Assembly: GCA_950097015.1 (NCBI GenBank)
Contig: CATNEN010000033.1
Location: 2,604,001-2,668,000 of the forward strand
DNA: 64,000 bases
Direction of reading: 5' to 3'
DNA from: Macrostomum hystrix
Lineage: Eukaryota > Animalia > Platyhelminthes
The translations under genes were made by a program, and so were the position numbers. The notes below the pieces were generated by a model that worked only from the letters and a program-made list of their open reading frames with translations, did not search any database and was not told where the DNA came from. How positions within the stretch are numbered: the first letter of the stretch is position 1; the number at the start of each line of letters is the position of its first letter. This document shows, in pieces, positions 19,242 to 64,000 of the stretch.

Positions 19242-22200
19242 TCAGGGTCGAGCGTTGAATGAGAAGTTCCTGGCCGACAGCGCAGTCTCGAATGCCGCGG
19301 CTGCAGCGGCGGCAGCTGAGGCGGCCTCCGTGCTCGCCGCTGGCTGCTGACTTGCTGGCCAGCCAAAGGCGGCGTTCGCCATCGCTAGGTACTGGCAGTA
19401 CTGACCGCAGATCGACAGGTCCACAGCTGGCATCAGGGGCGTCAGGGGTATCAGCGGCGGTGGTGGTGGAAGCCGTGGCTGCGTCAGCGGCGGCGGCGGC
19501 ACAAGCGACCTCGGTTGTTGGGGGCGGAACTCACCGGCCGCAGCAAACGCGGCCGCAGCGTCGGGCCCTAGGAGAGTGTCGATGTCGAAGTATCGCCTTG
19601 GCAACGGCGCTGAGGAAGTCGCTGCGGTCGGCTTCGTCCGCTTCCCGACGTCGGCGGCCGACTGTCCCGCGCCGGCTTCCGCCTGCGGCCGGACTCGCCT
19701 TTTCCGGCGTCGATAGTTGCCGTTCTCGAACATCTCGTCGCAGTTGTCGGCGAGGGTCCAGTAGTTGCCCTTGCCGGGCCTGGCCTTGTCTCGCTGCATC
19801 TTGACGAAGCACTCGTTCAGAGACAAGTTGTGCCTGATGCTGTTCTGCCAGCCCTGCTTGTTCTCGTGGTAGTATGGGAAATTGTCCATGATGAACTGGT
19901 AGATGCCTGTCAGGGATGCAGCGGTGGGACAAGTCTGAGTTTGTTGCTACTGCCGGATTGGGATCATTGGGGTCGGAACTCCCCTTCAGTTGGGAACAGA
20001 AGCCATGGCTTATCAATTAAAGGTTTCTTATGAAAGAATAAATAAAATATAGAATATTTGTTTACTTTGCTGAACTGCAGAATCAGTCCTGTCAATATTT
20101 ATAATTATTATAAAATAAGCTCCTAGCCTAAAACAAAACAAGCTCGGCATAATTTGCGCGGCATTTTCTGTTGTTTTAAGAGGCTCGAGCGCAGTTGCGG
20201 CCGCTTGCAAAAGCAGAAACTTAAGTCAAGTGTGTAGTCTAGGGGAGTCTCCCAACTGGGTCCAGCGATGGCTGGTTTGTTTGAAATGTGTAATTTACTT
20301 ATTTATCAAAAAGCACACTATGCAGAAGTGCCTGTTCAATTGGCCCTCGGCTGCTACCGTTAAGAGCGGGAGCGGCGCGGGAGGGCCACTTCTTCCTCCG
20401 CCATTCAGGGCTTCGCGCGGCATAAACAGAAAACAAGCACTCAGGCGGCAGATAGCGGAGCCGCATTCGAGCCGGCGGGCACTTCATTGATGCGGCGCGG
20501 GCTGTACGAGAGCCCCTTCCCACACCCACGCTGGTATGCGGACCTGCTTAGCATACTGGATCCCAGCATGCCAAAACAAAATAACTTCCGGATCAGGCCT
20601 AGCCGCTATGCAGTGTAAATAAACAGACCAGCCTGCACTGTGGCGGCCTGAGGAATTAAAGGCCAATTATAAGCCAAACTGGGGAGCGACTTTAGGGATT
20701 CGGCTCTGGACTTTTCACATCTCACCTTTCGGCTCCATTTGAAAGCCATCTCTCTGTTTGCCTACCTGTCCGGCTATCTACCTGCCTGCCTGCCTGCCTA
20801 CCTGCCTTGCCTACCTGCCTGCCTGCCTGCCTACCTGCCTACCTGCCTGCCTGCCTACCTGCCTGCCTGCCTGCCTACCTGCATACCTGCCTGCCTAACT
20901 GCCTGCCTGCCTGCCTACCTGCCTACCTGCCTGCCTACCTGCCTGCCTACCTGCCTGCCTACCTGCCTGCCTGCCTGCCTACCTGCCTACCTGCCTGCCT
21001 ACCCGCCTACCTGCCTACCTGCCTACCTGCCTGCCTGCCTGCCTACCTGCATACCTGCCTGCCTAACTGCCTGCCTGCCTGCCTACCTGCCTACCTGCCT
21101 GCCTACCTGCCTGCCTACCTGCCTGCCTACCTGCCTACCTGCCTGCCTACCTGCCTGCCTACCTGCCTGCCTACCTGCCTGCCTGCCTGCCTACCTGCCT
21201 ACCTGCCTGCCTACCCGCCTACCTGCCTACCTGCCTACCTGCCTACCTGCCTGCCTACCTGCCTACCTGCCTGCCCACCTGCCTGCCTACCTGCCTGCCT
21301 ACCTGCCTGCCTGCCTGCCTACCTGCCTACCTGCCTGCCTACCTACCTGCATACCTGCCTACCTGCCTGCCTACCTACTTGCATACCTGCCTACCCGCCT
21401 ACCTGCCTACCTGCCTACCTGCCTGCCTACCTGCCTACCTGCCTGCCCACCTGCCTGCCTACCTGCCTACCTGCCTGCCTACCTACTTGCATACCTGCCT
21501 ACCTGCCTACCTGCCTACCTGCCTACCTGCCTGCCTACCTGCCTGCTAACCTGCCTGCCCACCTGCCTGCCTGCCTGCCTACCTGCCTGCCTAACTACCT
21601 ACCTATCTATATATATACTCGTATATATATATATCAATCTATAAATCCATAAGTGATTATACTAATAAACATATTTCTATTTACAGCCGTGTAAAAACTA
21701 AAATAGAAACTGGAAACTGTGGATTGGTACTTTCAAACTCTCCAAAATGAAGCAGGTGCTCCCAGAAGATCAGTATTAATAGCCCCAGTAGATCTGCAAT
21801 TTACTTCAAAGGCCCAGCTCGAAGGCAGCTGGCATCGCTGGCAACAATTTCGATGCACGACCAATTTATTACAATGGCCAAACTTCAACAGCCCAGTCTC
21901 TGCTCTAGCTCTAGCCGCAGCCAAACGCAAACATGTTTTCAACAGCTGGCTGCAGCTAAATTTGGAACCTGCAGACGCAGCTGCGCTTAGCACCGCTGGG
22001 CCCTGGCTCATCCCGGCGATGGCAGCACGACTGCGTCAGCCATGCGGGTTGGGGGGCTCAGCAGAAGCCTATACTGTACTGCACCTGAAGCCTACTCAGC
22101 AGAAGCCTACTACTGTACTGTACCTGAAGCCTGCTCAGCAGAAGCCTATACTGTACTGCACCTGAAGCCTACTCAGCAGAAGCCTACTACTGTACTGTAC

Positions 22201-27254: not shown

Positions 27255-30200
27255 TCACTGGTCGGCAACGGCCGACGGACCCGGGGGCAGAAGAAGGCTC
27301 TGCTGCTGCTGCTGCTGCTGCTGGGTCTGCTGCAGGCCGCTGCACCGGTAGATGTAGATCCTGTAGTCCTTGCTAGCCAGCACAATGGACCCATCGTCTA
27401 GCAGGTCGATGTCGAAGCACTGGGCGTGCTTGATTCGCGACTCCAGGGCCTGCACAGGCCGGCCCTCCGGCGTGAAGACGGTCACGTTGAAATTGTTGTG
27501 ATTGTCGGCCACGACAATGTTGCCATCGGAGCGGACTGCCACACCGATGGGGTAGTTGGTAACGCCGCTCATGCCAATCTGGCCCATGTAGGCGCCGTGA
27601 TAGTTGAACACGCGAATGCAGTGGGCGCGATTGTCACTGATGTAGATCCTGTAGTTATTGTCCACCGCGATGCTGTTGGGAAACTGCAGGCGGCTGCACT
27701 TGAAGGTCTTCAGCACGATGCCGCTGGAGTCGAAGATAACAACGCGCATGATTTTGCACTCGATGCAGATCACCCGGCCGTCTCTGTCCACGCAGACTCC
27801 GCGCGGGTGCTGCAGCACGTCGGAGCCGAATTTTCTAAGAAATTCGCCTCGGCGAGTGTACACCTGCACCTGGTGAGTTGGAGATCGCTCGGTTATCACA
27901 ATATTGCCGGTGGCGCGGTGAACCGCCACGCGATTCGGGTACGTGAACTGGCCCTCGCGGCGGCCGTTCTCGCCGAAATGGAATCGCAGCTGGCCAGTGA
28001 CGCTGAACACCTGAATGCGGTGGTTGTTGGTGTCGGCCACAATGATCTCCTGCTCGGCGTTGACGGCTACTCCGCTGGGCTCCGTGAACTGGCCGTCTGT
28101 GAGGCCGAATTCGCCGAATTTCCTGAAAATGGCGACAGGTGAAATGAGTTTCGTCTGGAATATGTTCAGATGCGTATGGGATCTGGGTTGATTGGGATGT
28201 GACATATAGAATCATTGTGACTTGATAGGAGGATCCATGATCAGTGTGGCATGGTATGAGGATCTGGGATCAGTGTGACATGGTATGAGGATCTGGGATC
28301 AGTGTGGCATGGTATGAGGATCTGGGATCAGTGTGGCATGGTATGAGGATCTATGATCAGTGGGGCATGGTATGAGGATGAGGATCTGGGATCATTTTGG
28401 CATGGTATGAGGATCTGGGATCATTGTGGCATGGTATGAGGATCTGGGATCATTGTGGCATGGTATGAGGATCTGGGATCAGTGTGGCATGGTATGAGGA
28501 TCTGGGATCAGTGTGGCATGGTATGAGGATCTGGGATCATTGTGGCATGGTATGAGGATCTGGGATCATTGTGGCATGGTATGAGGATCTGCGATCAAAT
28601 TGTGGCATGGTATGAGGATCTATGATCAGTGGGGCATGGTATGAGGATGAGGATCTGGGATCATTTTGGCATGGTATGAGGATCTGGGATCATTGTGGCA
28701 TGGTATGAGGATCTATGATCAGTGGGGCATGGTATGAGGATTTATGATCAGTGTGGCATGGTATGAGGATCTGGGATCAGTGTGGCATGGTATGAGGATC
28801 TGGGATCAGTGTGACATGGTATGAGGATCTGGGATCAGTGTGGCATGGTATGAGGATCTGGGATCATTGTGGCATGGTATGAGGATCTGGGATCATTGTG
28901 GCATGGTATGAGGATCTGGGATCAAATTGTGGCATGGTATGAGGATCTGGGATCATTGTGGCATGGTATGAGGATCTGGGATCAGTGTGGCATGGTATGA
29001 GGATCTGGGATCATTGTGGCATGGTATGAGGATCTGGGATCAAATTGTGGCATGGTATGAGGATCTGGGATCAGTGTGGCATGGTATGAGGATCTGGGAT
29101 CAGTGTGGCATGGTATGAGGATCTATGATCAGTGGGGCATGGTATGAGGATGAGGATCTGGGATCATTTTGGCATGGTATGAGGATCTGGGATCATTGTG
29201 GCATGGTATGAGGATCTGGGATCAGTGTGGCATGGTATGAGGATCTGGGATCAGTGTGGCATGGTATGAGGATCTGGGATCAGTGTGGCATGGTATGAGG
29301 ATCTGGGATCAAGTGTGGCATGGTATGAGGATCTGGGATCAGTGTGGCATGGTATGAGGATCTGGGATCAGTGTGGCATGGTATGAGGATCTGGGATCAG
29401 TGTGGCATGGTATGAGGATCTGGGATCAGTGTGGCATGGTATGAGGATCTGGGATCAGTGGGGCATGGTATGAGGATCTGGGATCAGTGTGGCATGGTAT
29501 GAGGATCTGGGAAATGTGAGACTAGGCCCTATACTTGAAATATCAGTTCAGCTGAACCCACGTGTGGTACTGAATCCTGGCCCTAGCAACCAGCGGAGCA
29601 GACGGTGAGCTAATGTGCGAGCGAAGAAGGGCCTCAGTCAGCTGCTGATCAATAATGCCCAGCGCCTGGCTCTGCTGCTGCTGAAGTTGCAGCGCCTGTT
29701 GCTGATCGATGAGCTGCTCGATTGCACCAGGCGATATAGGCAAATCCGGCTTGGCCACAATGGCACAGTTGGCAGTGCCGGAGTCCAGAGCAACGGATGC
29801 CGGGTTGCAGTCGCTTCCGTGAGACCAGAGCAAAGCGCCACCGCCGCCACTGAGCTGACTCTGCTGCCGCTGTCGCTTCTGGCGCTGCTGCAGCCCGTCA
29901 GCAGCCAGGAGCAGTGTAGCGGCCGGCTGCAATGGGGCCGAGTTTTCCTTGTCGGCTGTGGCCAGAGTCGGCCAGCAGTTCAGCGAGGCGGACGAAGAGC
30001 TCGGCGCTGGGGCAGCCGCAGTTGTGGGCAGCGAGAGGTCCTCAGCTATGGCTGTCTGCGAACGCTGGTGCTGTTGCTGATGATGGCGGCCTTCGCCAAT
30101 GGCACCGAGAGGATTGCCGGGACGGCCCGTAGCAGCAGCTGCGGCGGCGGCCTGTTGTATCGAAGTGTGTGAAAAATCCCAAATTAGCTTTGATGCCATA

Positions 30201-33964: not shown

Positions 33965-36862
33965 CTAGTCTGCCGGGTCAAGGCCAAGCAAGTCTGCTGT
34001 CGGACAAGGCGAATTACTGCCAGCTTTGACTGCGCCGCAATGACTGGCGAATGATTCAACAGGCTCAGTCCACACTGCCGGGACCCAATCGCTGCCAACA
34101 TTCTCGTCCAGCTCGGACAGACTATTCCGGCGAGGCCAAACTAGTTGATTAAGGCTTTCGCCGTTGTCGCCAAGGATCGCCGATCTGCATAAGTCCTCTT
34201 GTGAGGCCGAACGCTTCCAGTGACGCAGTAGGGGCTGGGCGGCCGGATCGGCTGGCGGAGGCCCACAGTGCGGTAGGAGGTTGCTGGCTTCGGCGGACGT
34301 ATCAGCTGAGGCCTGGCAGCCTGAGAGCCACCAGCGGGATTCCAGGTAGCGCCAGGCCCTGGTGCGGGATAACAGAGTCTGCGGGCGAAGGAGATGGCTC
34401 AGGATGACAGGATTGCAGGCATTTGAGCTGCCTCAGACCCCCTGATACTCCAGTGAGCTGTCACAGACCCCTGATACTCCAGTGAGCTGTCACAAACCCT
34501 TGATACTCCAGTGAGCTGTCAAAAAACCTTGATACTCCAGTGAGCTGTCAAAAACCCTTGATACTCCACTGAGCTGTCAAAAACCCCTGATACTCCACTG
34601 AGCTGTCACAGACCCCCTGATACTCCAGTGAGCTGTCACAAACCCTTGATACTCCACTGAGCTGTCACAAACCCTTGATACGCCACTGAGCTGTCACAGA
34701 CCCCCTGATACTCCAGTGAGCTGCCACAGACCCTTGATACTCCACTGAGCTGTCACAAACCCTTGATACTCCACTGAGCTGTCACAAACCCTTGATACTC
34801 CAGTGAGCTGTCAAAAACCCTTGATACTCCAGTGAGCTGTCACAGACCCCTGATACTCCACTGAGCTGTCACAAACCCTTGATACTCCAGTGAGCTGTCA
34901 CAAACCCTTAATACTCCAGTGAGCTGTCACAAACACTTAATACTCCAGTGAGCTGTCACAGACCCCTGATACTCCACTGAGCTGTCACAGACCCTTGATA
35001 CTCCACTGAGCTGTCACAAACCCTTGATACTCCACTGAGCTGTCACAAACCCTTGATACTCCAGTGAGCTGTCAAAAAACCCTTGATACTCCAGTGAGCT
35101 GTCAAAGACCCCTGATACTCCACTGAGCTGTCACAAACCCTTGATACTCCAGTGAGCTGTCACAAACCCTTAATACTCCAGTGAGCTGTCAAAAAACCTT
35201 GATACTCCAGTGAGCTGTCACAAACACTTAATACTCCAGTGAGCTGTCACAGACCCCTGATACTCCACTGAGCTGTCACAAACCCTTGATACTCCAGTGA
35301 GCTGTCAAAAAAAACTTGATACTCCAGTGAGCTGTCAAAAACCCTTGATACTCCAGTGAGCTGTCACAAACCCTTGATACTCCAGTGAGCTGTCACAAAC
35401 CCTTGATACTCCAGTGAGCTGTCACAAACCCTTAATACTCCAGTGAGCTGTCAAAAACCCTTGATACTCCAGTGAGCTGTCAAAAACCCTTGATACTCCA
35501 GTGAGCTGTCACAAACCCTTGATACTCCAGTGAGCTGTCACAAACCCTTGATACTCCAGTGAGCTGTCACAAACCCTTAATACTCCAGTGAGCTGTCACA
35601 AACCCTTGATACTCCAGTGAGCTGTCAAAAACCCTTGATACTCCAGTGAGCTGTCAAAAACCCTTGATACTCCAGTGAGCTGTCAAAAAACCCTTGATAC
35701 TCCAGTGAGCTGTCAAAAAACCTTGATACTCCAGTGAGCTGTCAAAAAACCTTGATACTCCAGTGAGCTGTCAAAAACCCTTGATACTCCAGTGAGCTGT
35801 CAAAAAACCTTGATACTCCAGTGAGCTGCCGATGGCCCAACGATCATGTTTTACACCCAACTCATTACAACTTAATGCACAATGCTCGTTCGCATAGAAC
35901 CTTTGTTGTTAGTCACTAACACTAAAGGTGCAAATACAGGAAACTGGGATGTGTGACATATAAAACATACGATTCGAAATTCTACAAAAAATTATTTTCT
36001 CACGGTAAGAAGTGAAGATTTAGTGCAACTAGCTAAGATGAGCTTATAGCAAATGCAAATTCTCAGCTAAGTAATTCGAGCTGGCCGCATATTTGTTATG
36101 TAAGACGCAAAGCTGATGCAAAATAGCAAGCCAGCCTTTCTGGTCACTAAAACTATGTCCATTCGGAACCAATTAAGTGACTAAGAAAGCGGATACAAAG
36201 GGCCACATTCGGCTTATTCTATGCCTAAAAATTAAACAGAAACGTCTTAATAAAGGATCTGGGAGGTTAGTAGACCAATTTGAGGATCTGTTGGAAGGGC
36301 GGCAGTGCCATCTGAGGATCTGTTGGAAGGGCGGCAGTGCCATCTGAGGATCTGCTGGAAGGGCGGCAGTGCCATCTGAGGATCTGCTGGAAGGGCGGCA
36401 GTGCCATCTGAGGATCTGCTGGAAGGGCGGCAGTGCCATCTGAGGATCTGCTGGAAGGGCGGCAGTGCCATCTGAGGATCTGCTGGAAGGGTGGCAGTGC
36501 CATCTGAGGATCTGGGTGGATGGCAGCCCCATCATCAGGATGTCATACAGAGAGCCAAATTGTCTTACCTTCTCAGCTAGGACAGAGGCATCGGAGCCAA
36601 GACAAGTAAGAAGCGAGCCGTCAGTTACCTAAAATTCACAATAGCGAGCTTTACTCTGAAAGCTGCATAGCTTCTTAGACTACAATTGAATGAAAGCATT
36701 AATTCTTACCCTGCGATTCTTGCACGGCAGATCGTCGACAGCCGAGGGCGCCCCATCGTCCCATTCGTCAGGCGCCGACGACGCGGCCGCTTTTGATGGC
36801 GCAGCTACGACCGGCGCTTTTCTTCGAATTCGACCTTTGAAGTAGCTCCAAGTGGACTTCAT
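33965..36862 (-). CDS. Unidentified multi-exon gene (starts MKSTWSYFKGRIRRK)
   Basis: Exon 36862-36710 (AGG|GTAAG), exon 36628-36569 (TTTTAG|...AAG|GTAAG), and a stop-free ~155-codon GC-rich frame from ~34430 to TAG at 33965-33967; the link to the last exon is unresolved. Confidence 0.45.
34436..35828. repeat. 29-bp minisatellite (GATACTCCAGTGAGCTGTCACAAACCCTT)n
   Basis: Direct inspection. Confidence 0.95.
36277..36515. repeat. 32-bp minisatellite (GAGGATCTGCTGGAAGGGCGGCAGTGCCATCT)n
   Basis: About 7 units. Confidence 0.95.
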
Positions 36863-46361: not shown

Positions 46362-48505
46362 ATGTCCATGCTACCAATGGCGCCTCCTCATCGCCAGCCA
46401 CTGTCCATGCTGGCCTGCTTTCTAATTGGCAGTTTCGCTCTGGGATCCTGGATTGACATCAATGGCGTCTTCAATGAGCTGCCGTTGATGGTGAAGACTC
46501 TTCCAGAGGGCTGGTCGCTGCCATCCTACCTGGCTGTGATTGTTCAGCTGGGCAACATTGGACCAGCCGCTTTCCTGCTCGCCAGTCGCCTAAGCCGCGG
46601 CCGATTCACCGATCGCGCTGGAGTCTTCCTCATCAATGCCACTGGCGCCGTGGCGCTGCTGGTGCTGACATTCGTCTGGCCAATCACCGTTGACAATCGC
46701 AGCCTGCCCCTGATGCTGGTGGTGCTGGCGCTGTCATTGGTTGATTGCTCCTCCTCTGTGGTCTATCTCAGCTACATGTCAGCTTATCCGACTGTCTACC
46801 TGAGCGCACTGTACGTTGGCGAGGGCGTTGGAGGCCTACTGCCTGGATTGCTGGCCCTGGCTCAAGTGAGAATAGTTTCGACTAATCTGCGCGAGTATAT
46901 AAAATCTATGCTAACACATGTACCTCTAAAATTTTAAATGCCTCTAGACTTCTCTTTTATCTAAACTTGTTTTCTTTCTTTACGGCTCTACTGTTTCCCT
47001 GCCTACCGCTCTACACACGCTCATTTCTTCCTTCCCTTCCTCCTGTCTCTCCATTCCCTCTCTTCCCGCCCCCTCTTTCCCACCCCTCTCTTTACTATCC
47101 CTCTCTTTCCCACCCCTCTCTTTCTCACCCCTCTCTTTCCCACCCCTCTCTTTACTATCCCTCTCTTTCCCATCCCTCTCTTTCCCACCCCTCTCTTTCC
47201 CACCACTCTCTTTCCCATCCCTCTCTTTCCATCCCTCTCTTTCCCACCCCTCTCTTTCCCACCCCTCTTTTTCCCACCCCTCTCTTTCCCACCCCTCTCT
47301 TTCCCACCACTCTTTTTCCCATCCCTCTCTTTCCATCCCTCTCTTTCCCACCCCTCTCTTTCCCACCCCTCTCTTTCCCACCCCTCTCTTTCCTATCCCT
47401 CTCTTTCCCACCCCTCTCTTTCCCACCATCTCTTCACCGCCCCCTCTCTCCCCCAATCCCCAGTCCATCTCTCCTCCGCTCTCCCTGACTTACCTACCTC
47501 TTCTTCGCTTCGCTTCTACCATCTATCTTTTCTCTCTCCTCATGCAGCTCTCCCTCTCTCATTCGTGTTATTTCGAGTACTTAGATATGTGAAATGGTGG
47601 AGCCAACTTGTATTCAGGGCTCCGGCGGCGCCCCGGTCTGCATCAATGGCACCCATCCGGTGTACGCGCCGCCACGCTTCTCAGTTAGCGTATTCTACGG
47701 CCTGCTGTGCGGCATGCTCTGCTACAGCCTCCTGGCCTTCTGGTTGCTCACCGTCTGGCCGTTTCGCGGAGTCGCCCGGCCAGCCGTGAAAGATCATGGC
47801 GCGACTGTTCAGGTGAGACTGCAGGCTGCGAAGATTCACTTGGACTGTCACTCCCGGGTTTTAAGTATTTTTTGTTCTAAACTGTCATATCCCGCTTGTC
47901 CACAGATTTCACCGGTGCCTGTCGAACAACCCGCGCCACCGCCGGACGAGAACACTAGCCTGCGGCAGCCGGGTCGTAGCTCTACCTCGGCTCCGAATCG
48001 GCCCATGCTGCTAGCATTAGTAGTACTGCTGAACGCATGGGGCACCGGCCTGTTGCCATCACTGCAGTCTTACTCGGCCCTACCCTACGGCTACAGCGCC
48101 TACCACCTGGCCGTGACTCTTTCAAACTTAGCCAATCCTCTGGCCTGCTTCTTAACATTCATTTGGCGTGCTCGGTCTGTCACCGTCCTGCTGGTCCTGG
48201 TTACCACCGGCTGCTGCGCCTGCGCCTACGTTACAGTCCTGGCCGCGATGTCGCCGGAGCCACCCCTAGTCGGCAACAATCTTGGCGCCGGCTTGATGAT
48301 TTCGGCCTGGACTGCCGCCTCCGGCCTATTCAGCTATGCAAAAGCGTCTATTGCGGCTACACTCAGCGAGGATGCGGCAGGAGACGGACGCCGCTGGCTG
48401 CGCCTTACCGGAGTCGCCACCCAGGCCGGTGCCGCGGTCGGCGCCGTCATAGGTTTTCTACTCAGTGTGGTCTTCGCTGTGCTGCGCGACTCACCACCGT
48501 GCTAA
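46362..48505 (+). CDS. SLC52A: SLC52 family riboflavin transporter
   Basis: Exons 46362-46865, 47618-47812, 47906-48505 (all phase 0, GT-AG); motifs GSWIDINGVFNELP, LPEGWSLPSYL, VDCSSSVVYL, LLPSLQSYSALPYG, GVATQAGAAVGA. Confidence 0.88.
47070..47450. repeat. 15-bp pyrimidine-rich minisatellite (CCCCTCTCTTTCCCA)n in SLC52 intron 1
   Basis: Direct inspection. Confidence 0.95.
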
Positions 48506-51300: not shown

Positions 51301-53200
51301 TCATTGTTCGATCAAATTTTGCCGTTCCCGAAGCCTCGCTCTTAGACGTTCCCTTTGTTGGATAGTCATCCAGTAGCGAACTCCATGTATGATGAGCTGA
51401 AGTTCAGCTTGGGCGTCCTCAAGAAGCTCTAGCACTTCCATGATGTCTTGTGCTTCATCCTCTCTTACACCAGTCACGAACAAGACAGCCTTATAGTCTT
51501 CTGCTGACCGGTGATGTTGCAGCCATTCTTGAGTGCGCCGTAATAATAAGCATAACTCATAACTCAATAGGCGTCCTAGCGGGAGGTGCCGCGCGCCGCG
51601 AGTGGACCCACGCCAACATCGTCGGCATCCCGAAGAAGCCGGGCACCACACGGATGGAGGAGCATCGTGGGATTTCGCTTATGTCCTGTGCTGCGAAGCT
51701 TTTCAACCGGGTGCTGTTAGCACGGTTACAGCCTGGGCTGGACCCGTACCTGCGGTACGAGCAGAACGGGTTCCGGCCTCGTCGTGGCACAGTCACGCAG
51801 ATCCTGGCCCTCCGCCGCATCATCGAGGAAGCGCGCATCCACCAGTCAAGCCTAGTTGTCATCTTTGTTGACTTCCTCAAGGCTTTCGACTCGGTGGCCC
51901 GCGGCGCGCTGCCTCTCGTGCTCCGTGCTTACAACGTACCGCAGCAGCTGATCTCCGCCATCATGACGCTGTACCAAGACACCACCGCTGCAGTAGCGAC
52001 GCCAGACGGACCGTCGGACCTGTTCAGCACGACCTCCGGAGTGCTGCAGGGTGACACTCTGGCGCCCTTCCTCTTTGTTTTGCTGATGGACTGGGTGTGC
52101 AGAATCGGCCTGCCGACCGCAGAGGACGGCTTTCTACTGCAAAGGCGCACCAGTCGGCGACACCCGGAGAAGAGGCTGTCCCTCCTCGGCTACGCGGACG
52201 ACCTCGCCCTGCTGTCTACGATGGCCGAAGGCGCCCAACGGCTGCTGGATGGCCTGACTGCGGCGGCTGCGAGGGTTGGCCTCGTCATCAACGCCAAAAA
52301 GACCGAGGTGCTGACGGTGCCGCACGATCTACCCGCCGAGATCCGACTCCGACTCCGAGACGGCGATGCTCCTGGGACGGTGCTCCCGAAGTGCCGTCAG
52401 TTCCTCTACCTCGGCGGGCTGGTGCCGGACGTGAGTGACGACCTGGCGAGACGGCGCGGCAAGGCCTGGGCCGCCTTTCGATCTGTTCGGGCGGTGCTGC
52501 TCTCGGAGGCCCTGTCGGACAGCGCCAGGTCCCAGCTGTTCCAGGCTGTTGTCGAGACTGCCCTCCTGTACAATGCTGAGACCTGGACGCTGACCGGGGC
52601 GCTCGAGGGGCAGCTCGACGCGGCGCATGCGGCTCTGGTTCGTGCCGCGTTCGGCGCTCGCCGCGGCCCTGGCAGCGAGACGACCGACTCCCTGTACCAT
52701 CGAGCGCGCCTGACGCGGCCTTCTGCCCTGCTGAGCAAGCGACGTCTGCGGCTTGCCGGGCATGTCATCCGGGCCGAAGCCTACTGCCCAGAGCCGCTGC
52801 AGGACGTCCTGCTGTGGACTCCGCAGGGACCTCGCAGGCGTGGACAGGGACGAACGGCTCGCTACATCGACCGTCTTTTTGATGATGCGCGAGCACCCAG
52901 CCAGGCAGCCGGCGTGAAGCACGTCAGAGACCTTGCCCTGAAGCGCGCGATTTGACGCCCCCCTTTTTTGGCCACTTGTGGTCGGCGCGGGGCGTGAGAT
53001 TATTATTATTATTATTATAACTCATTAGCACTACACTCAGCATTTGGAACACCGCGCTGCAAACTAGGTAGCTGCTCGAAGCACCCTCGATGCGCTATGA
53101 ACCGGCCAATGCAATCTATGCGACAGCTGAGAAAGAGTTGAAATACGTGCGGCTGAAGATACATTTGCGCTAACTGCGTCTGATGGGCAATGAACGACAT
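51301..53200 (-). pseudogene. Orphan 144-aa ORF split by a LINE insertion
   Basis: Removing 51561-53025 joins ...NAECSANEL to CLLLRRTQEWLQHH... in frame (435 nt, ATG 53200 to stop 51301). Confidence 0.7.
51561..53016 (+). mobile_element. 5'-truncated RTE-like non-LTR retrotransposon (LINE) with uninterrupted RT frame
   Basis: Frame open 51561-52955: RGISLMS, QNGFR, FVDFLKAFDSV, GVLQGDTLAPFLF, YADD; 3' hairpin and (ATT)n tail; TSD ATAACTCAT at 51552-51560 and 53017-53025. Confidence 0.92.
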
Positions 53201-54803: not shown

Positions 54804-55064
54804 TCTCCATAGAGTATATTTTAGCAAACACAGATGAGTCCGTCCACAGACAAATCAAATGAATACAGGCCAGTCTGGGTATTAAGAACAAGAAATCTTT
54901 TTCGGCCAAGAGAGCAGCCCATAGCCCAGACTACCGAGTGATAAAATACAATACAATCGCCAGGGCGACTTCTACGGATCCAACCTGAGAGTTGTAGGCA
55001 GGATCAGCCTGAGACAGCTGAAACCAGTGGCTGCTGACACAGAAGAATACCTGCATGATACAAC

Positions 55065-55432
55065 ATGAGCAACATGTTTCCATTATTCTCTGCGCCCTTC
55101 CGGGCATTCGTTATCGCCTCCGCTGCAGCGGAGTTAGAAGCAGCATTGAAAGCTGCGACTGATGCAGCGAGTGCCGCGGCAGCAGAGGCCTTCGGGCCAG
55201 GACGGCGCGGGGCAGAGGAGGCAATGGCCGCAGCTATGCGGCGGGTCAGGGCGGCCATGCTACGCATCGCCAGGGCCCGCCGCATAGCTGCGGGCTTGGA
55301 CCCCTATGTGAGTAGCAGATTTCGACTTTGATTTTCATTTGAATATTTATTAACACATCTGATAACATCAGAGCTAACAAACTACATGAGACCTAAAACC
55401 CATCTTTCATCCCGCAGCCGGGTGTGCTATGA
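55065..55432 (+). CDS. Small Ala-rich orphan protein (~85 aa, two exons)
   Basis: CAACATG start; donor TAT|GTGAGT at 55308, acceptor CCCGCAG| at 55417, then CCG GGT GTG CTA TGA. Confidence 0.4.
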
Positions 55433-55444
55433 GGATTCCAGGCA

Positions 55445-55520
55445 TTTCGGCGACAGTTAATTTCGGCGACACTGAAAATTGTGACTTCGGCGACAAGCAA
55501 TGTTAAATTCGGCGAAAAGT
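55445..55520. repeat. Four spaced TTCGGCGA motifs (transposon-end-like)
   Basis: Direct inspection; no inverted partner in the window. Confidence 0.4.
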
Positions 55521-56702
55521 TTCTCTTTCACTTTCACAAATCATTTTATATGGCTATTTACTCGTATTTAGTCTCTTCTTACTAACAAAACCAATGCGTC
55601 TATATCCTACCGTAACCGCCTACAGCCTACGAAATACTTTCCTTTTTTGTTAAATGTAACAAACACGTGTGCTATGACAAGCAATCCTGTGACGTGCTGA
55701 TTGTTTGTTGGGATAAGAAGCTTGATAAATATCCGCACTCTGACTTTGTACCCACCAACCTAAAGAGACTGACCAATTGTTTGAGCGAACCACATGTACT
55801 GTGGTTTCCGCGTTTATTGAATCGAAATTTAAATTTTATCGTATAGCCACATCTTAAGTACCATGCATGCAAATGCAAATGTTTCGCGTAATTTGTTGTA
55901 AAAAGTAGTACGTTGCTGTAGCACAAAGCTAAATTTCACAAAGTTAAAATACTCGACATTAAAACATGACTGTGTGGAGATACAGTACATTAGACACGCA
56001 TCGAAAGAGTGCAGTCTCAGTCTTGAAAGGAAAAGTTAGCATAAGATTCACACCAAAAATAACGAACAGCATTGCATTATGTTAAAAGCATTAAAGGGCG
56101 TTTAGCCGTGGAACATTTAGCCGACTGCAGGCTTCCAGCAGTGCCTCCTCAGATCGCAGTCCTTCAGACTTCCTTTCCTTAATCGGAAATTGGTGTACAT
56201 TTTCACCATAAAGCATGCTGGTATGCTGGTATGTAAGCGCATAGAGAATAATTTCATAAGAAAGCCCCCTGGTTTCACGGTCGGGGGTGGGTGAGGGCAT
56301 TGCGTCATTCGCGCAGAATATATGCTGAATATATGAGACGTGCAGAATATATGCTGAAGCGATCTGACATTATTGTTAAACAAAAAATTGAAAATAGAAA
56401 TAAAGACGAGTTTGTTTGTTAGTTAATTATTCGTTTTATAGTTCTCACAATCCATTACTTCTTTTGTTGGTTATTTATTTTATCATTTAAATAATATGAA
56501 CTGACTGGCGGTTATGCGGTGTACATTGGCAGTTTAAATGTTTTAAACTACGAGGGGTGTTTCTACGAGAATTAAACTACGAGAATTTAGTCATAACTTT
56601 TTAATGGATAAACTTTAAACAAAGTCCCCTATAGGTACGTTTCTGACGATTTTTCTTAAATATGACGACAGAATGTGTCATAAAGTAAGATTTTAGCAAA
56701 AA

Positions 56703-56733
56703 CGTCATTTTTTCTGAGTCATAAAAAATGACG
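56703..56733. other. Perfect dyad CGTCATTTTTT-N9-AAAAAATGACG
   Basis: 11-bp arms, 9-nt spacer CTGAGTCAT. Confidence 0.8.
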
Positions 56734-58384
56734 AACAACATTTTTACTTAAAACCACGTGAACCACGAGCCTTTCCATGCCTTCTATCATGTGCTGCAGT
56801 AAGAAAGCCATAGGATGATAAAGAAGCGGTCTATTAGAGCAAAAAAATATGACGTGGACAGAAAATATTGACCCATGACACAAGCAGAACAAAATCTGAC
56901 AAAATGACACACGCTGACGGCTTTAACATTTTATTTACGGTTAAACAAAGAAGAGTGTTTCCTGATTTTAATTTTAATGGCTTTTGCTTAATTTAGTTTT
57001 AGTAATTACATTTTTTGTTTTATATTACTTAACTAATTGTATAAGAACATATTGCAAATATTAAGTAGTTTTTTTCAAACTACAGCACGCTTCTAGGTCG
57101 ATAGAGATTGCTAGACGTTGCTAAAACCTAGTGCTACTAACTTGGTCCTTACACATGAGAGATGGTCCTCACACATTGGCTTCGACGACCAATTTTAATT
57201 ACTTTTCCTTTCCTTTCTTCTCTGTGTGGAACTTTTTCCTTTGGCCTAATAATAGCTAAAGTTGTTTAAATAATAATGTGGGCTTGAACTGCAGGGTGCA
57301 TGCATCTAAAATCTATATCCTAACTTTCTATAGTCAGCATTCTGTTGCTAGATAGGCTTTTGACGGTCCTAATAGCAATTTTGTAACTTTTTTTCTAGGA
57401 TAAACTTTTCTATATATGATAAGACCTTCAATAAGTACATTATAGATAATATGGGTTATTGAGATTATATAGGCTCAATGCGAATAATTTTGGTTTAAAG
57501 TTCAATAAGTCAATAGCAATCTAGTAAAGTTTAAGTATGTAAATTATAAAGGCATTTGAAACAGAGTATGTTAGGTAGATCATTTACTAAGGACATTTTG
57601 GTTAATAAAGTATGAAATTATATATATAAAAACTTGATAAGTTCTAATTCTAACACTTTATTAAGTTTTTTCTATTTATAGTATAGCTGGTGTTGGCTAT
57701 GTTGGCAGCCAAATTTTTTTATGGTTTAATCATTGCATTGATTATATATCTTATGAGTGTTAAGCATGGTAATAGTTGGTACCCAGAAAAATAAGTTACC
57801 AAAAGCATTCTGCTAGAACTTCACATTAAGAGGTATTTTTATAGGTATGACTTTCTTTCTAATATGCCATGTATTTGCCAAAACATTGCTTTGCAATAAG
57901 TCTATATGTTTTTGGTATGGTTTATATGACATTGACCAACTCTAAAGCTAGTCATTCCTTTGTGGATAGTATAATCCAACTTAAGACCTCTATGCTAGTT
58001 ATCTTGCTATCTAGATAGTGATAGTGTTTATATTATATAAATTGAAGACAGGTAAATAAGCAATATCTTGACTTGAATCCTAGTATTGATAGCTTGGTAG
58101 CAATTTTTTAAACATTGAATGCATATTATTTTAAAGCACTTCCTGTATTGTCAGACTTTTGACCATAAATATGCTTTGTATTGGCAATATGGATATTAGC
58201 TAACTTTAGAATTCTTAACATTAGTACAAATGAAAATATTATAAAGCTATGTCTTGGATAGTATTACCTAGTAACATAAACATTCCAGGATAATATTGCC
58301 TAATTGAATACTGAAATGGTCTATAAGAGAGCCATTGGTATCTTTCAAAAAGATTTTTGAGACAATTAGAGACCTAGAAATTTG

Positions 58385-59197
58385 TTCTGTGAGACTGCAA
58401 AAGTGACGGTTGCACATTTTAGAAAATATGACCTCTGTGTGTTCTATGAGACTGCAAAAGTGACGGTTGCACATTTTAGAAAATATGACCTCTGTGTGTT
58501 CTATGAGACTGCAAAAGTGACGGTTGCACATTTTAGAAAATATGACCTCTGTGTGTTCTATGAGACTGCAAAAGTGACGGTTGCACATTTTAGAAAATAT
58601 GACCTCTGTGTGTTCTGTGAGACTGCAAAAGTGACGGTTGCACATTTTAGAAAATATGACCTCTGTGTGTTTTGTGAGACTGCAAAAGTGACGGTTGCAC
58701 ATTTTAGAAAATATGACCTCTGTGTGTTCTATGAGACTGCAAAAGTGACGGTTGCACATTTTAGAAAATATGACCTCTGTGTGTTCTATGAGACTGCAAA
58801 AGTGACAGTTGCACATTTTAGAAAATATGACCTCTGTGTGTTCTGTGAGACTGCAAAAGTGACGGTTGCACATTTTAGAAAATATGACCTCTGTGTGTTC
58901 TGTGAGACTGCAAAAGTGACGGTTGCACATTTTAGAAAATATGACCTCTGTGTGTTCTGTGAGACTGCAAAAGTGACGGTAGTACATTTTAGAAAATATG
59001 ACCTCTGTGTGTTCTATGAGACTGCAAAAGTGACGGTTGCACATTTTAGAAAATATGACCTCTGTGTGTTCTGTGAGACTGCAAAAGTGACGGTTGCACA
59101 TTTTAGAAAATATGACCTCTGTGTGTTCTGTGAGACTGCAAAAGTGACGGTTGCACATTTTAGAAAATATGACCTCTGTGTGTTCTGTGAGACTGCA
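58385..59197. repeat. 57-bp tandem array x~14 directly upstream of the recombinase gene
   Basis: Unit TCTGTGTGTTCTRTGAGACTGCAAAAGTGACGGTTGCACATTTTAGAAAATATGACC, near-identical copies. Confidence 0.95.
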
Positions 59198-59338
59198 ACT
59201 CAACTTAAATTAGCAACTCAATGTCTCAACCCGAAAATCTGAGATTTTCACATCGTACAATTACCACATGTGTGTGAACAGCAGTCTGAAGAAGCAACTA
59301 AATTCAGTCTAATTCGGTTTTCATTTCGCTCTTCAGCG

Positions 59339-62300
59339 ATGGAATCCAATCATTGGTCACCTAATCGGCCAGCACGCAAGCCTCCAGATGCATCCACAAG
59401 CCTGCTTCAACATCTCCTAAACGATGCACCAATTTCAATGCTAGAGATGCAAAATCTTCTATTTGATGATCCACAGTCTAAACAAATGCAAGATGGAGTC
59501 CAAGTCATCGACCCGAAGGCGCCACTGATTGCCGCGTCTGATCAGGTGCAAGATGGAGTCCAAGTCATCGACCCGAAGGCGCCACTGATTGCCGCGTCTG
59601 ATCAGGTGCAAGATGGAGTCCAAGTCATCGACCCGAAGGCGCCACTGATTGCCGCGTCTGATCAGGTGCAAGATGGAGTCCAAGTCATCGACCCGAAGGC
59701 GTCGCTTACTGCCGCGTCTGATCAGGTGCAAGATGGAGTCCAAGTCATCGACCCGAAGGCGCCACTGATTGTCGCGTCTGATCAGGTGCAAGATGGAGTC
59801 CAAGTCATCGACCCGAAGGCGCCACTGATTGCCGCGTCTGATCAGGTGCAAGATGGAGTCCAAGTCATCAACCCGAAGGCGTCGCTTACTGTCGCGTCTG
59901 ATCAGGTGCAAGATGGAGTCCAAGTCATCGACCTGAAGGCGTCGCTTACTGCCGCGTCTGATCAGGTGCAAGATGGAGTCCAAGTCATCGACCTGAAGGC
60001 GTCGCTTACTGCCGCGTCTGATCAGGTACAAGTGACAAGCCAAGTCAGTAAGAGGAAAGTAGGTGCAAATAGTAATTCAAAAGTCCGGCTCTACAATGAA
60101 ACCGACTGTGACCTCGACGCTGATGAGGCATCACAGTCTCTATCATCGAGTATTTTCCGTCTGCAGCGTCGTCGATTATCGATGATAATCGCTGTGTGAA
60201 AATGGACAAGTCTCTTCGATCGATCGGAAACATTGCCAGTTCCAAAAGGACTATATTGAAGCCGCGTCAAGGCGTTGACTATGTATGTCATGTCGATCCA
60301 ACGCACATTATTAAGGCATCAAGAATTAGGCAACATTTTTTTAGGAAGCATGAAGCTCAGATGTTGGAATATGCTTCCTTTGATGACCTTAGAGAGGAGT
60401 TAATTTCATTCAACGAAAAGCGATTTGGTAAGCTGCATAAAGTTAAGAGGAATACCGACAAATCAACAAAGCGACAAGGCAAGGATTACAGGTGCCACTT
60501 AGACAAGTGTCATTTAATAAAAAAATCCAGATTTCTAGAACACTACAAGCTATTTCATGCCGACGAGCTCAGATCTGAGGGCCGCAAGAGTCTCATTGAA
60601 AAAAGTAAGAGATTTACTATCCAGTTTCTTGCTGCCGAAGATGCACAGAGTTCTACTACACAGATGCCGAGGGACTGTGAACTGCAGAAGTCGCTTGATG
60701 TCGAAAACTCAACTGAATCGACAGATGAAGATAAAGAAGAACATCTGATAGCCACATCTTCAAATGCAGTTGGTGTTTGTCCACGCTGTGAAATCCCTGT
60801 GACTAACATTTCAAGCCACCTGAAAAACTGGCACAAAATGAGCTCCGAAGAAGCAAAAGAGTGCATTGCTGGAGTGAAGGAGAAAATCGTCTCGTCATAT
60901 GTTTCAAGTAGCTGGATGGCGAAATCTGCGCACGCTAGTTCATCTGCTGCAGCTGAAGAAGAATGGAGTTCTGAGCCAACTTCGGAAAGTTTCTACAATC
61001 ATCTAAGGTTGTTTAGTGGTGGGAAATTTGCCGAGTCAACTGCTAAGCAGTCACGAAGGTCTCTCGATAAAATTATGTCGGTTCTTGGAGTTGTTCGACC
61101 ACTAGAGATTATTAGAGAGAAGCATCGCTCTCAAATAACCGTCTTCCTAACTGGCAAATCCAATTCATTCTCCGACGGCACGAAGTCCTACGTTGAAGGA
61201 TTAAAGCGCTTTGGCCAATATCTAAAGAGCTCATTCTCAAGGCTTGTTTCCAGCAACGGATTGTCAAGTGACTTAGAATCATTTCTATGCACATGTCATA
61301 GTTACGGAAAGTCCAGAGTCCGCGACAAAAAAATCGCCGAAGCAAAGCGCAGGCGCAAATTAGACAAGAGCCTTCTTTCTGTGAACGAACTAAATGTTTG
61401 CTTAAACGTCCTTGAGTTCTTTCGAAAAGCCGCCGAATCGACGTCTGTTGGATCTCAACAGCATCTTTTGTTCCTTGGCCTTCACTTCATTTTCGGCAAA
61501 GCAAACTTTCATCGCGCGGACGCTGTGTCGAACGCAAAGATGGAGCAATTTTTCGAGTGGAAGAGGGATTTGGAGAACGATCCCGATGCCATGTTTGAGG
61601 TTGTGGACCATAAAACCTCGACACAAGGTGCTATTTTCGTATCTGTTTCTGAAGTTAAGGAAAGCTTGCTGGCCTATGGTGAGTTCAGGCTGAATTGTGG
61701 CGCTGTTCTCTCAGATTTTTTCTTCGATTACGGTCGTCAAGTCGCGGGCCACTCCTTTTCGACTTTCCTGCGTAGTCTACGCCGCACTTACCCGATCTTG
61801 AACGATCTGAAGCAGTTCGACGTCAAATTTTTTCGACACTTTTTCACCACAAAAGGTCGAGAGCACCTAAACGAAGAAAAGCAAAGTGTACTGCACAAGC
61901 GAATGAATCATACAAAGCAAGTAGCAGTGCAAAGCTACATGGCTACTACGTCTAGTCTAGCCAAAGAAGGTGAAAAAGTTGCAAAAGAGCTTTTCGATAT
62001 CGCTCTTTCAGAGCCATGCAAAGAAGTGAGCCAGGTGGCTCTAGAGTCTGAAGTCGAAGTGAGGACTCCTGAGTTTGTCAGTGAGGCACAGAATGCTGAT
62101 ATGAAGAAAAGTAAAACTGCAGCTAGCAAAGGTGCATCTAAGCGAGTTCACCTAAGCCGCCAGATCAGTACTAAAGTCCGCAAGAATCGAGCCAAGTCGC
62201 AGGATCCGAAGACCTTCAAAACTATTAATCATGGAAGACGTTCAAAGGCGCAAGCCATTTCAAGAATAGTATCATCACTAATTCATCCAAATGATCAGTC

Positions 62301-62643
62301 AACGCTAGTGCAGGAGCAGGAACAACCGCGAACGTTTGCAGAGGGTGACGTCGTCTTGGCAAAACTAAAAAGTTTTCCTTGGTGGCCAGCACTAGTTTGC
62401 CGCGAGCAAAAAAGTAACGCTTTTTCTCGCATTGCTTCCAGTGGCAATCATTTTCTGCATGTTCAGTTTTTCGAGGAACCACCTACTCGAGAGTGGATAA
62501 CTTACAAAAACGTGAAACCGTTTAGTCCGACTGACGCCTCTGCTGACTGCAGTAATGATCCTGTTCTGTTGGCGGGAATGAACTCAGCACGACAAAGCCT
62601 GATGTTAAGCAAAGTGAATCGACTAAATATAGCTAAGTCGTAG
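59339..62643 (+). CDS. Tyrosine recombinase (Crypton-like) fused to 20-aa repeats, C2H2-like fingers and a C-terminal PWWP domain; ~1061 aa if spliced
   Basis: Exons 59339-60047 and 60167-62643 via intron GTAAGA...TTTTCCGTCTGCAG (phase 1); YR motifs NFHRADAV (R 61513), DHKT (K 61612), KFFRHFFTT (R 61834), MNHT (H 61909), VQSY (Y 61936); PWWP FAEGDVVLAKLKSFPWWPALV (62377-62388). Confidence 0.75.
59488..60027 (+). repeat. In-frame 60-bp coding repeat x9 (QDGVQVIDPKAPLIAASDQV)
   Basis: Exact 60-nt period inside ORF 59270-60199. Confidence 0.95.
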
Positions 62644-63486
62644 TCTGTTTTTAACAATAACTCAACCTGTAGTACATTTTTTCACTTCTGGAATCGTCAA
62701 AATGGTTCCTGTACTTATTTGCACAGTAAAGGGAATATTAGAAACTCCAAACTAAAGCAAGCATAATTTCACTCATGCTGTATCCATAAAATCATGCTAA
62801 TCATTTAACTACCAAATTAGAAGCTCAAAATGGAGAAAAAAGTAGTGTCGTTTTTTGTCATGTGCCATTGATCGTGATTGCAATCACCAAGATACTCGTA
62901 ATTTTCTATGTTCGAAAAGTTCTGTTTTTGCGAGTTTAACACATTTTTTTAAACGTCTAAACTTTTCTAGCAAAGTTGCATAAAATATTTGATATTATAC
63001 GAGCTATTAGCTAAAATCCTAAGCGCTGACTGTGTAAAGCAATAAGTCAACGTTAATGAACCTAAAATTGTCTAAGGCTTCTAAGAAAAATTCACTAGCA
63101 TTCATGAGGCTTTTCACGAAGCGATTCCAGAACCAGAATTATACAAGAAAAATAGCGTTATAACTAATGACTGTTAATAACACGATAAAGCAAGAAGATT
63201 CGATTTTATACGATTTTTAGCCACTTTTATTATTATAGTCAATCTTTCTCAAAAGTTTCTGAATATCTCTCGACTATTTCTCATCTAGGTGCTGAAAAGT
63301 TATAATTGACAAAATGGTTCTGGTTCTGGAATCGGCACCGACAGTACGAAAAGCCTACTTGACATCGTTCAAGCAATCGCTAATAATTTACTAATTTACT
63401 GCTTTCGTTCCGTTTCGTTTTTCATAATGTATCTAATGGCGTTTCGTTTCGGGCTCAAATGCTTTTCGTAATCTCGTTCACTGGTT

Positions 63487-64000
63487 CTTTAATGTTTCAT
63501 TATATTTCATCATGTATTGAGCTCTAATTTTTGCGTCATCTCAATCACAGTTCTTTAATGTTTAATTATATTTCATCATGTATTGAGCTCTAATTTTTGC
63601 GTCATCTCAATCACAGTTCTTTAATGTTTCATTATATTTCATCATGTATTGAGCTCTAATTTTTGCGTTATCTCAATCACAGTTCTTTAATGTTTAATTA
63701 TATTTCATCATGTATTGAGCTCTAATTTTTGCGTCATCTCAATCACAGTTCTTTAATGTTTCATTATATTTCATCATGTATTGAGCTCTAATTTTTGCGT
63801 TATCTCAATCACAGTTCTTTAATGTTTCATTATATTTCATCATGTATTGAGCTCTAATTTTTGCGTCATCTCAATCACAGTTCTTTAATGTTTCATTATA
63901 TTTCATCATGTATTGAGCTCTAATTTTTGCGTCATCTCAATCACAGTTCTTTAATGTTTCATTATATTTCATCATGTATTGAGCTCTAATTTTTGCGTCA
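63487..64000. repeat. 66-bp tandem array (x>=7.8, runs off the window) downstream of the recombinase gene
   Basis: Unit TCTTTAATGTTTCATTATATTTCATCATGTATTGAGCTCTAATTTTTGCGTCATCTCAATCACAGT. Confidence 0.95.

Follow-up and report, generated by a model that had tools for sequence, protein, structure and literature searches.

A tyrosine recombinase gene with a C-terminal PWWP domain in Macrostomum hystrix: evidence for a single-gene DNA transposon with a putative chromatin reader

The joining of a DNA recombinase to a chromatin-reading domain within one predicted protein raises the question of whether the gene belongs to a mobile element, and, if it does, whether the reader helps to determine where that element lands. 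Such a protein is encoded in a 64,000-nucleotide (nt) stretch of the flatworm Macrostomum hystrix (assembly GCA_950097015.1, contig CATNEN010000033.1, positions 2,604,001 to 2,668,000 of the forward strand), which is referred to below as the window and within which all positions are counted from its first letter. An initial annotation of positions 59339-62643 had proposed a Crypton-like transposon whose product combines a tyrosine recombinase (YR), zinc fingers and a PWWP domain. In the reading put forward here, which we consider likely, the window from 56626 to some point beyond 64000 is a copy of a DNA transposon that carries a single gene, is mobilized by the YR which that gene encodes, and has a PWWP tail that would bias integration towards methylated chromatin. 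Taken on its own, the proposal that the PWWP domain is the source of regional site choice is a hypothesis to which we give rather less than an even chance.

The plus strand of the window holds an open reading frame (ORF) of 815 amino acids (aa) at 60196-62643, free of introns, which bears out the frame first proposed and is identified from the ORF list and by its identity to P0001, a protein of the related species Macrostomum lignano (48-51% identity across 690 aa). The hypothetical proteins of M. lignano are the only close protein relatives. The frame encodes two CHHC-like zinc knuckles (60286-60558), a C2H2-like finger (60778-60834), a two-domain tyrosine recombinase (60970-62034) and a PWWP domain that continues with C-terminal helices up to the stop codon (62344-62640), all on the plus strand, and in the interval 56626-64000 this recombinase gene is the sole gene.

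The identification of the central region as a recombinase is based on its predicted structure and on the conservation of catalytic motifs. An AlphaFold model of aa 251-630, built from an alignment of 14 family sequences, has a mean predicted local distance difference test score (pLDDT) of 82 and comprises a core-binding domain (about aa 259-390) and a catalytic domain (about aa 392-613). When this model is compared with the PDB by Foldseek, archaeal XerA and XerD stand on top (probability 0.99-1.0), followed by XerA chains, Brujita integrase and Cre, and in the Swiss-Prot part of AFDB the best 30 matches are all XerC, XerD or XerA, with both domains covered. A second look with VIA-align gave variola topoisomerase IB (Z 9.6), Brujita integrase (9.5) and XerA (9.2), the best 27 matches all being tyrosine recombinases or type IB topoisomerases, and a VIA search of 48,161 PDB representatives, which is independent of Foldseek, again returned only these two classes among its top 24. 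The isolated domains also match separately in VIA: the core-binding domain matches lambda Int with a root-mean-square deviation (rmsd) of 2.6 A over 89 aa (48,161 chains), and isolated catalytic domains match likewise; the Tn1549 integrase (Z 7.0) is also among the matches of this search. The Z values are middling, with a maximum of 9.6, and the top 24 contain no competing fold. The structure search had been set beforehand as the check on the recombinase assignment, and every top match in it is a YR or a type IB topoisomerase.

The catalytic candidates lie exactly where they had been placed, at R440 (61513), K473 (61612), R547 (61834), H572 (61909) and Y581 (61936); all five are invariant between the window protein and P0001, and they are conserved in the alignment of the 14 family members. 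The spacing of nine residues between H572 and Y581 is what we take to be Xer-like spacing, as in XerD. This structural and motif-based evidence supports the view that the window protein is, by its predicted fold, a tyrosine recombinase. The family to which it belongs is very small, with 14 proteins at E <= 0.001 among 1.84 billion representatives, and consists of M. lignano proteins together with a few metagenome and Logan contigs. None of the 14 members matches DUF3504 (PF12012) up to E 10, and the family is therefore not CryptonA, the recombinases of which match DUF3504 at E <= 8e-12 (PMC3212892).

The evidence for mobility comes from a sister element in M. lignano. Two copies of this element, at L001:7203-16586 and L004:7187-17691, are 99.2% identical besides array copy number; over their lengths of 9.4-10.5 kb the similarity breaks off sharply on both sides, where the flanks are unrelated and the neighbouring genes differ. 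Both copies have intact ORFs, and apart from changes in repeat number their coding sequences are distinguished by two codons, one change being synonymous and the other non-synonymous. The L001 element contains one long ORF and no reverse transcriptase within its boundaries, and no helicase is found within 10 kb of the M. lignano element. The element ends read CCCCTATAGGCACGTTTATGAC ... GTCATAAACGTGCCCC, and the 14-nt arm GGCACGTTTATGAC is found at either end of the element, in opposite orientations, and nowhere else in the locus; besides these perfect arms, inverted AAAAATGAC motifs are also present subterminally. The stop codon is followed by arrays of 80-bp and 190-bp units and then, at a distance of 3.3-4.4 kb, by the right end.

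Two contigs of M. lignano that represent the empty site, L005 and L007, were recovered by way of a neighbouring 74-aa protein. They match both L001 flanks at 99.9%, with the flanks abutting each other in the absence of the element. The empty site is ACGA-CCCC-GAAGG (CCC in L007), and the occupied site has CCCC at either end. The sister element of M. lignano is mobile and was inserted recently at a 4-bp microhomology; insertion at short target microhomology is also what the Crypton model describes (PMC13465315).

The search for element ends and empty sites by flank alignment, which had been suggested along with the transposon proposal, has thus been successful in M. lignano, and it has located the left end of the window element, but not its right end. 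The left terminus, which consists of CCCC, TATA and a 14-nt arm GGTACGTTTCTGAC at 56626-56647 on the plus strand, reads CCCCTATAGGTACGTTTCTGAC in full and is identical to the M. lignano left end at 20 of 22 positions; it is the sole match in the window, where none is expected by chance. Similarity between the window and L001 starts exactly at the left boundary of the M. lignano element (56626-56747 against 7203-7324), and the left terminal block (56626-56960, plus strand), in which (A)nATGAC / GTCAT(T)n motifs are clustered, has 78% nt identity to L001:7203-7324 and 7389-7437, a value higher than the 66-70% found for the coding region.

The organization of the repeats around the gene extends this correspondence. 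Motifs of the form (A)nATGAC cluster under the ends of both elements and are inverted at the M. lignano right end; the pattern A[AT]ATGAC occurs 19 times in 56626-59309 compared to 14 times in the remaining 56.6 kb of the window, and 38 times in the L001 element compared to once in 13.9 kb of its flanks. A 57-bp tandem array of about 14-18 units occupies 58269-59309 (plus strand; TRF and a repeat finder), each unit containing a 29-nt module that ends in AAATATGAC. This module, TGACGGTTGCACATT..AAA.ATGAC, is identical at 25 of 29 positions between 58404-58432 in the window, from where it recurs in each 57-bp unit, and L001:15008-15036, where it sits in the 190-bp array. The module is conserved to this degree although the two proteins share no more than about 50% identity, and its array stands upstream of the gene in the window and downstream of it in M. 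lignano. A 66-bp array (63352-64000, plus strand; detected by the same two programs) runs off the window, and probably corresponds to the internal arrays of M. lignano downstream of the gene.

The departure of the 66-bp array from the window in this direction is likewise what would be seen if the gene were part of a larger element extending past the window end and did not constitute an element of its own. We regard this as very improbable, because the sister element is self-contained in 9.4-10.5 kb with one gene, as two copies and an empty site attest, and because the window has the same left end and the same gene order.

The annotated PWWP domain is confirmed by Pfam (PF00855 at aa 717-783, E 1.1e-14, 55.2 bits against a cutoff of 25.6), by alignment to MSH6 and by the ESM Atlas, in which the nearest clusters of the window domain are PWWP. 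The best solved match is the MSH6 PWWP domain 2gfu (E 2.4e-13, aa 713-814, about 35% identity over 102 aa), and the alignment extends through the helices that follow the barrel; 41 PDB PWWP chains match the domain, and MSH6 outranks NSD3, NSD2 and DNMT3B. Residues F726, W729 and F756 occupy, in this alignment, the positions of Y, W and F in the MSH6 PWWP domain, which are reportedly, from work of Li and colleagues in 2013, the methyl-lysine cage of that protein. With F726, W729 and F756 presumably at the aromatic cage positions, the cage of the window domain appears intact, and we infer from this that the domain binds methyl-lysine. Word-indexed protein searches with the PWWP domain alone, and with a piece spanning the YR tail and the PWWP domain, found no second YR-PWWP junction outside the window. 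A weak PWWP-like match (tblastn/tblastx) at L001:18368-18421 was dropped as chance; it is situated outside the element, which ends at 16586.

The three zinc-finger motifs that had been called C2H2-like all exist, but the description holds for the third only, as the first two are CHHC-like. The two knuckles, C31..H52 and C100..H121, have the spacing C-x5-H-x9-H-x4-H; their ligands are invariant between the window protein and P0001, and the pattern recurs in the family alignment. This spacing is that of the CHHC finger of U11-48K/GTSF1 type, modelled as C-x5-H-x9-H-x3-C, with a final His at x4. The corresponding Pfam model, PF05253 (zf-U11-48K), matches the window protein weakly (E 0.86), P0001 at E 0.026 and P0003 at E 8.6e-5 (22.8 bits against a cutoff of 21.1), and GTSF1 matches the family profile at E 5.6 only. 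The third motif (C195, C198, H208 and H213, spaced CxxC-x9-H-x4-H) has four ligands that are invariant in 11 of 11 aligned relatives, and in profile searches it matches C2H2 fingers of the PDB weakly.

A number of observations weigh against the interpretation of the window locus as a YR-mobilized element with a PWWP tail. At the level of the recombinase, no recombinase model of Pfam (PF00589, Phage_integrase) matches the window protein or its near relatives, the distant member P0013 attaining E 3.5e-5 and 24.1 bits, under the gathering score of 27.1, and a search of PDB sequences with the family profile returned no solved recombinase, just weak zinc-finger matches. The first His of HxxR is replaced by K, as had been noted at the outset, and the loss is family-wide, with K544 in the window protein, R in P0001 and T or S elsewhere; to judge from the residues alone, catalysis would be non-canonical owing to this loss. 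At the level of the element, the right-end arm was not found in the window up to base 64000; in M. lignano two arrays and a distance of 3.3-4.4 kb separate the stop codon from the right end, and the corresponding end of the window element is therefore expected beyond 64000. A Logan contig of 3.5 kb crosses the gene unbroken, so that sample contains no second copy of near-identical sequence; divergent contigs of run X5, which are 90-95% identical to the window gene, indicate on the other side that paralogous copies are present in the window species. The M. lignano mobile copies are without a PWWP domain and end instead in a basic repeat of KKRGPGGQQ type, so that movement is proven directly for PWWP-less copies only. 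Finally, the assembly places the N-terminal coding part and the 815-aa frame out of frame with each other.

The last of these points concerns the start of the gene. Position 59339, which had been taken as its first base, is a real ATG, but it belongs to a separate upstream ORF in another frame, which comprises 309 codons at 59270-60199 and has this ATG as its first (59339-60199). The N-terminal motif of the upstream ORF is homologous to the N-terminus of the M. lignano protein P0017 (E 2e-6) and is followed by nine 20-aa repeats, detected by TRF as nine 60-bp coding repeats at 59487-60032 on the plus strand. Both P0001 and P0017 (1,076-1,117 aa) are single unbroken ORFs in which an N-terminal motif, coding tandem repeats, knuckles and recombinase follow one another, and on the evidence of the ORF list, TRF, the homology to P0017 and the similar layout of P0001 the N-terminal coding part of the window gene is assigned to 59339-60166 (plus strand, frame 2). 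The frame break falls at an indel site, 60167-60178 (plus strand). In run X1, a DNA contig that matches the window without other differences over 3.4 kb has 41 letters instead of the 10 of the window at 60168-60177, and the net gain of 31 nt is the exact shift that fuses the two frames, which are joined only with this variant. In a contig of run X5, loose letters stand at this site; the 30 that are shown form ten sense codons, and the letters probably represent the same insertion. Since these contigs carry an indel at 60168-60177, the frame break is an allele or an assembly slip and not an intron. A short intron at 60137-60166 joining the frames was considered and rejected, because it would be only about 30 nt long and because of the same indel.

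If the frame break is taken at face value, together with the right end that is not found within the window and the 2-nt insertion at 61066 in one divergent contig of run X5, then the window copy could be a dead relic, that is, a true insertion whose N-terminus is frameshifted, whose right end is perhaps truncated, and which is now immobile and non-functional. This is in our judgement unlikely. No stop interrupts the 815-aa frame, the catalytic and cage residues are all intact, and the X1 contig, and probably the X5 contig, carries the frame-restoring variant. In addition, runs X4 and X5 contain contigs that cover the gene and end near 62785 in the manner of a transcript 3' end, which suggests that the gene is transcribed (the library types of runs X4-X7 are not on record). 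A 374-nt contig of run X9, which is labelled as probable RNA from a third organism, is identical to the PWWP-coding end of the gene (62317-62690), and the run contains nothing else of the gene.

The same locus could also have arisen by domestication, in which case a captured recombinase would have gained the PWWP domain and would now serve the host, without mobility, as a chromatin protein or a site-specific recombinase. The absence of the PWWP domain from the proven-mobile copies fits this explanation, as does the uniqueness of the locus at k=31 in run X1, and Crypton recombinases have repeatedly been domesticated in animals (PMC3212892). The Crypton-derived DUF3504 host genes (KCTD1, ZMYM2-4, QRICH1 and KIAA1958) resemble the window gene in that they combine a recombinase-derived domain with zinc fingers or with other domains of chromatin and transcription proteins. 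These host genes have, however, lost the catalytic Tyr and Arg and are single and syntenic (PMC3212892), whereas the window gene has R-K-R-H-Y intact and lies inside element termini; because of these two properties it is not a domesticated gene of the DUF3504 type. Domestication in general is made distinctly unlikely by further features: the left arm has diverged from that of the active element in M. lignano at just 2 of 22 positions, the terminal block has changed less than the coding region, and the same array layout surrounds the gene. The genes flanking the window element, moreover, are not those found at either M. lignano locus, and there is no shared synteny. A single-copy syntenic gene with degenerate catalytic residues had been named as the alternative to a mobile element, and on both residues and neighbours the mobile element is favoured.

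If the window copy is such an element, then its ends and domains are consistent with the following scheme. The recombinase would bind both arms and excise the element as a circle, the joint of which, as deduced from the integrated ends, would read arm - CCTATA - arm and form a core site resembling lox or FRT. The circle would then recombine with any chromosomal CCCC through microhomology, in the manner of Cryptons or in that of CTnDOT and Tn916. The (A)nATGAC motifs, both those beneath the ends and those within the arrays, are probable accessory protein-binding sites, perhaps for the zinc knuckles, and the AAAATGAC module is a candidate zinc-knuckle target. Because the target requirement amounts to just about CCCC, or 4 bp, site choice must come from elsewhere, and a reader domain is a plausible source: the MSH6-like PWWP domain may tether the recombinase or the circle to methylated nucleosomes of the H3K36me2/3 type and thereby bias integration there. 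In its full form, the proposal would make the element a YR transposon that reads histone methylation through its own PWWP domain, a one-protein equivalent of LEDGF and integrase, with a site composed of a 14-nt arm, a 6-nt spacer and a 14-nt arm, a target homology of about 4 bp, and a recombinase lineage that falls outside every named Crypton group. We advance this full form tentatively, as something possible that falls short of probable.

The PWWP domain of a mobile element could, on the other hand, have a function other than the choice of targets. It might tether the circle to chromatin through mitosis, or it might compete with MSH6 at H3K36me3 and so spare a mismatched joint from repair. 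The tethering of episomes to chromatin by reader domains is established for some viruses. The domain is closest to the MSH6 PWWP domain, C-terminal helices included, and integration at a 4-bp microhomology would imply a heteroduplex joint. We consider a role of this kind doubtful, as the precedents for readers associated with integrases, namely the chromodomains of chromoviruses and the PWWP domain of LEDGF with HIV integrase, concern target choice (PMC4176367).

The relation of this proposed transposon to known systems can be judged from its composition. Cryptons (Goodwin 2003; Kojima and Jurka 2011, PMC3212892) are, like the window element, eukaryotic DNA elements in which a YR is the sole enzyme and reverse transcriptase is absent, and, like the M. 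lignano sister element with its CCCC, they have short (4-6 bp) direct repeats at their ends that match the target; circle excision and microhomology are presumed for them. The window family differs from Cryptons in having neither a DUF3504 match nor the His of the R-H-R-Y tetrad, in its large internal tandem arrays, in its length of 9-10 kb for a single 3.3-kb gene, in its CHHC-like knuckles and, in the window lineage, in its PWWP domain. Cryptons are also said to lack terminal inverted repeats (PMC13465315), whereas the sister element has 14-nt perfect inverted arms and subterminal motifs. The designation Crypton-like is therefore apt for the layout, a single YR gene without reverse transcriptase, and for the likely mechanism, but two Crypton descriptors fail, given the terminal inverted arms and the lack of a DUF3504 match.

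Cre/loxP, Flp/FRT, Tn916, Tn1549 and CTnDOT share the two-domain fold, and their inverted arms around a spacer of 6-8 bp are like those predicted here; the conjugative transposons among them integrate with little or no overlap homology, as is proposed for the window element. The window element differs from these systems in being eukaryotic and nuclear, in that its arms and spacer are deduced from integrated ends, and in having no identified accessory factor of the Xis kind. Poxvirus type IB topoisomerases are among the top matches of the catalytic domain (Z 9.3-9.6, rmsd 3.5-4.5 A), and we take the KxxR of vaccinia topoisomerase (K220/R223) to be like K544xxR547. The window protein is set apart from them by its Xer-like core-binding domain and residue spacing, and the K is not conserved in its relatives, which have R, T or S. 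The YR retrotransposons DIRS, Ngaro and VIPER contain reverse transcriptase and RNase H and have long repeats that are split direct or inverted, and reverse transcriptase is absent inside the M. lignano element boundaries.

With regard to the reader, the chromodomain integrases of chromoviruses and the pair formed by LEDGF/p75 and HIV-1 integrase likewise couple a reader module to an integration enzyme, and in the latter pair the PWWP domain of LEDGF recognizes H3K36me3 and directs integration to transcribed genes (PMC4176367). Those integrases are DDE enzymes of retroelements and LEDGF is a separate host protein, whereas here the reader is in cis on the YR of a DNA transposon. The MSH6 PWWP domain (2gfu, 6oqm), the best match by sequence, has cage residues Y/W/F that become F/W/F in the window; MSH6 itself is a mismatch-repair protein, the rest of the window protein is unlike it, and the binding of H3K36me3 by the window domain is putative. 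A full-text search of the literature did not find Crypton and PWWP together, the texts which contain both "tyrosine recombinase" and "PWWP" describe no fusion as far as their titles and abstracts indicate, and a literature search on YR-PWWP elements in Macrostomum found nothing.

A second M. lignano family of the same clade, represented by P0009 and P0015, consists of zinc-finger recombinases with intron-containing genes. Its element of about 8 kb is present at L002:8481-16903 and L003:7692-15640 in copies that are 99.3% identical, with unrelated flanks and sharp ends (CCATACTTTCC...GGAAAAGCC) bordered by CC at either end; it contains internal 450-bp tandem repeats, and one copy resides in an intron of a UQ_con gene. 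If the termini were joined they would read GGAAAAG-CCATA-CTTTCC, a design like that of the first family. The first exon of the P0009-type gene (L002:9899-10090, plus strand) encodes 64 beta-rich aa, RVLVYWQD...GAFVMYNDENGKSWIGCVGK. This exon was considered as a possible small beta-barrel reader, since it recalls such barrels, and was set aside, as it has no Pfam match.

The window as a whole is animal DNA with many tandem arrays, for which TRF gives 27 rows. Long arrays are unusually dense in 1567-47452, with periods of 15-57 bp and lengths that in many cases are 0.5-1.4 kb; examples are 28211-29512, 34424-35828 and 1567-2770, and several of the arrays produce long spurious ORFs on both strands. 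The host genes detected are a forkhead fragment (19245-19889, minus strand), a fragment with NHL repeats (27258-28205, minus strand) and a two-exon SLC52 riboflavin transporter (46362-48505, plus strand). An ORF of 501 aa at 51450-52955 (plus strand) encodes a reverse transcriptase (RVT_1, E 1.6e-29); it lies outside the element, 3.7 kb to the left of its left end, and is probably an unrelated retroelement. Pfam returned no matches for the ORFs at 49.6-55.3 kb, to the left of the element, Rfam and tRNA scans of 54-64 kb returned nothing credible, and a comparison of positions 1-55000 with 55001-64000 revealed no resemblance.

On this reading, the element represents a distinct YR transposon lineage in which a chromatin reader is fused to the recombinase. 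Fusions of a reader to the integrating enzyme have been known for DDE integrases, in chromoviruses, and HIV borrows a PWWP protein from its host. If the PWWP domain does bias integration, then Macrostomum would offer a natural experiment, in which the landing sites of related lineages with and without the reader could be compared. Since the ends, the target and the probable core site can now be defined, biochemical tests are straightforward, and they could yield a small animal-derived recombinase with a defined site.

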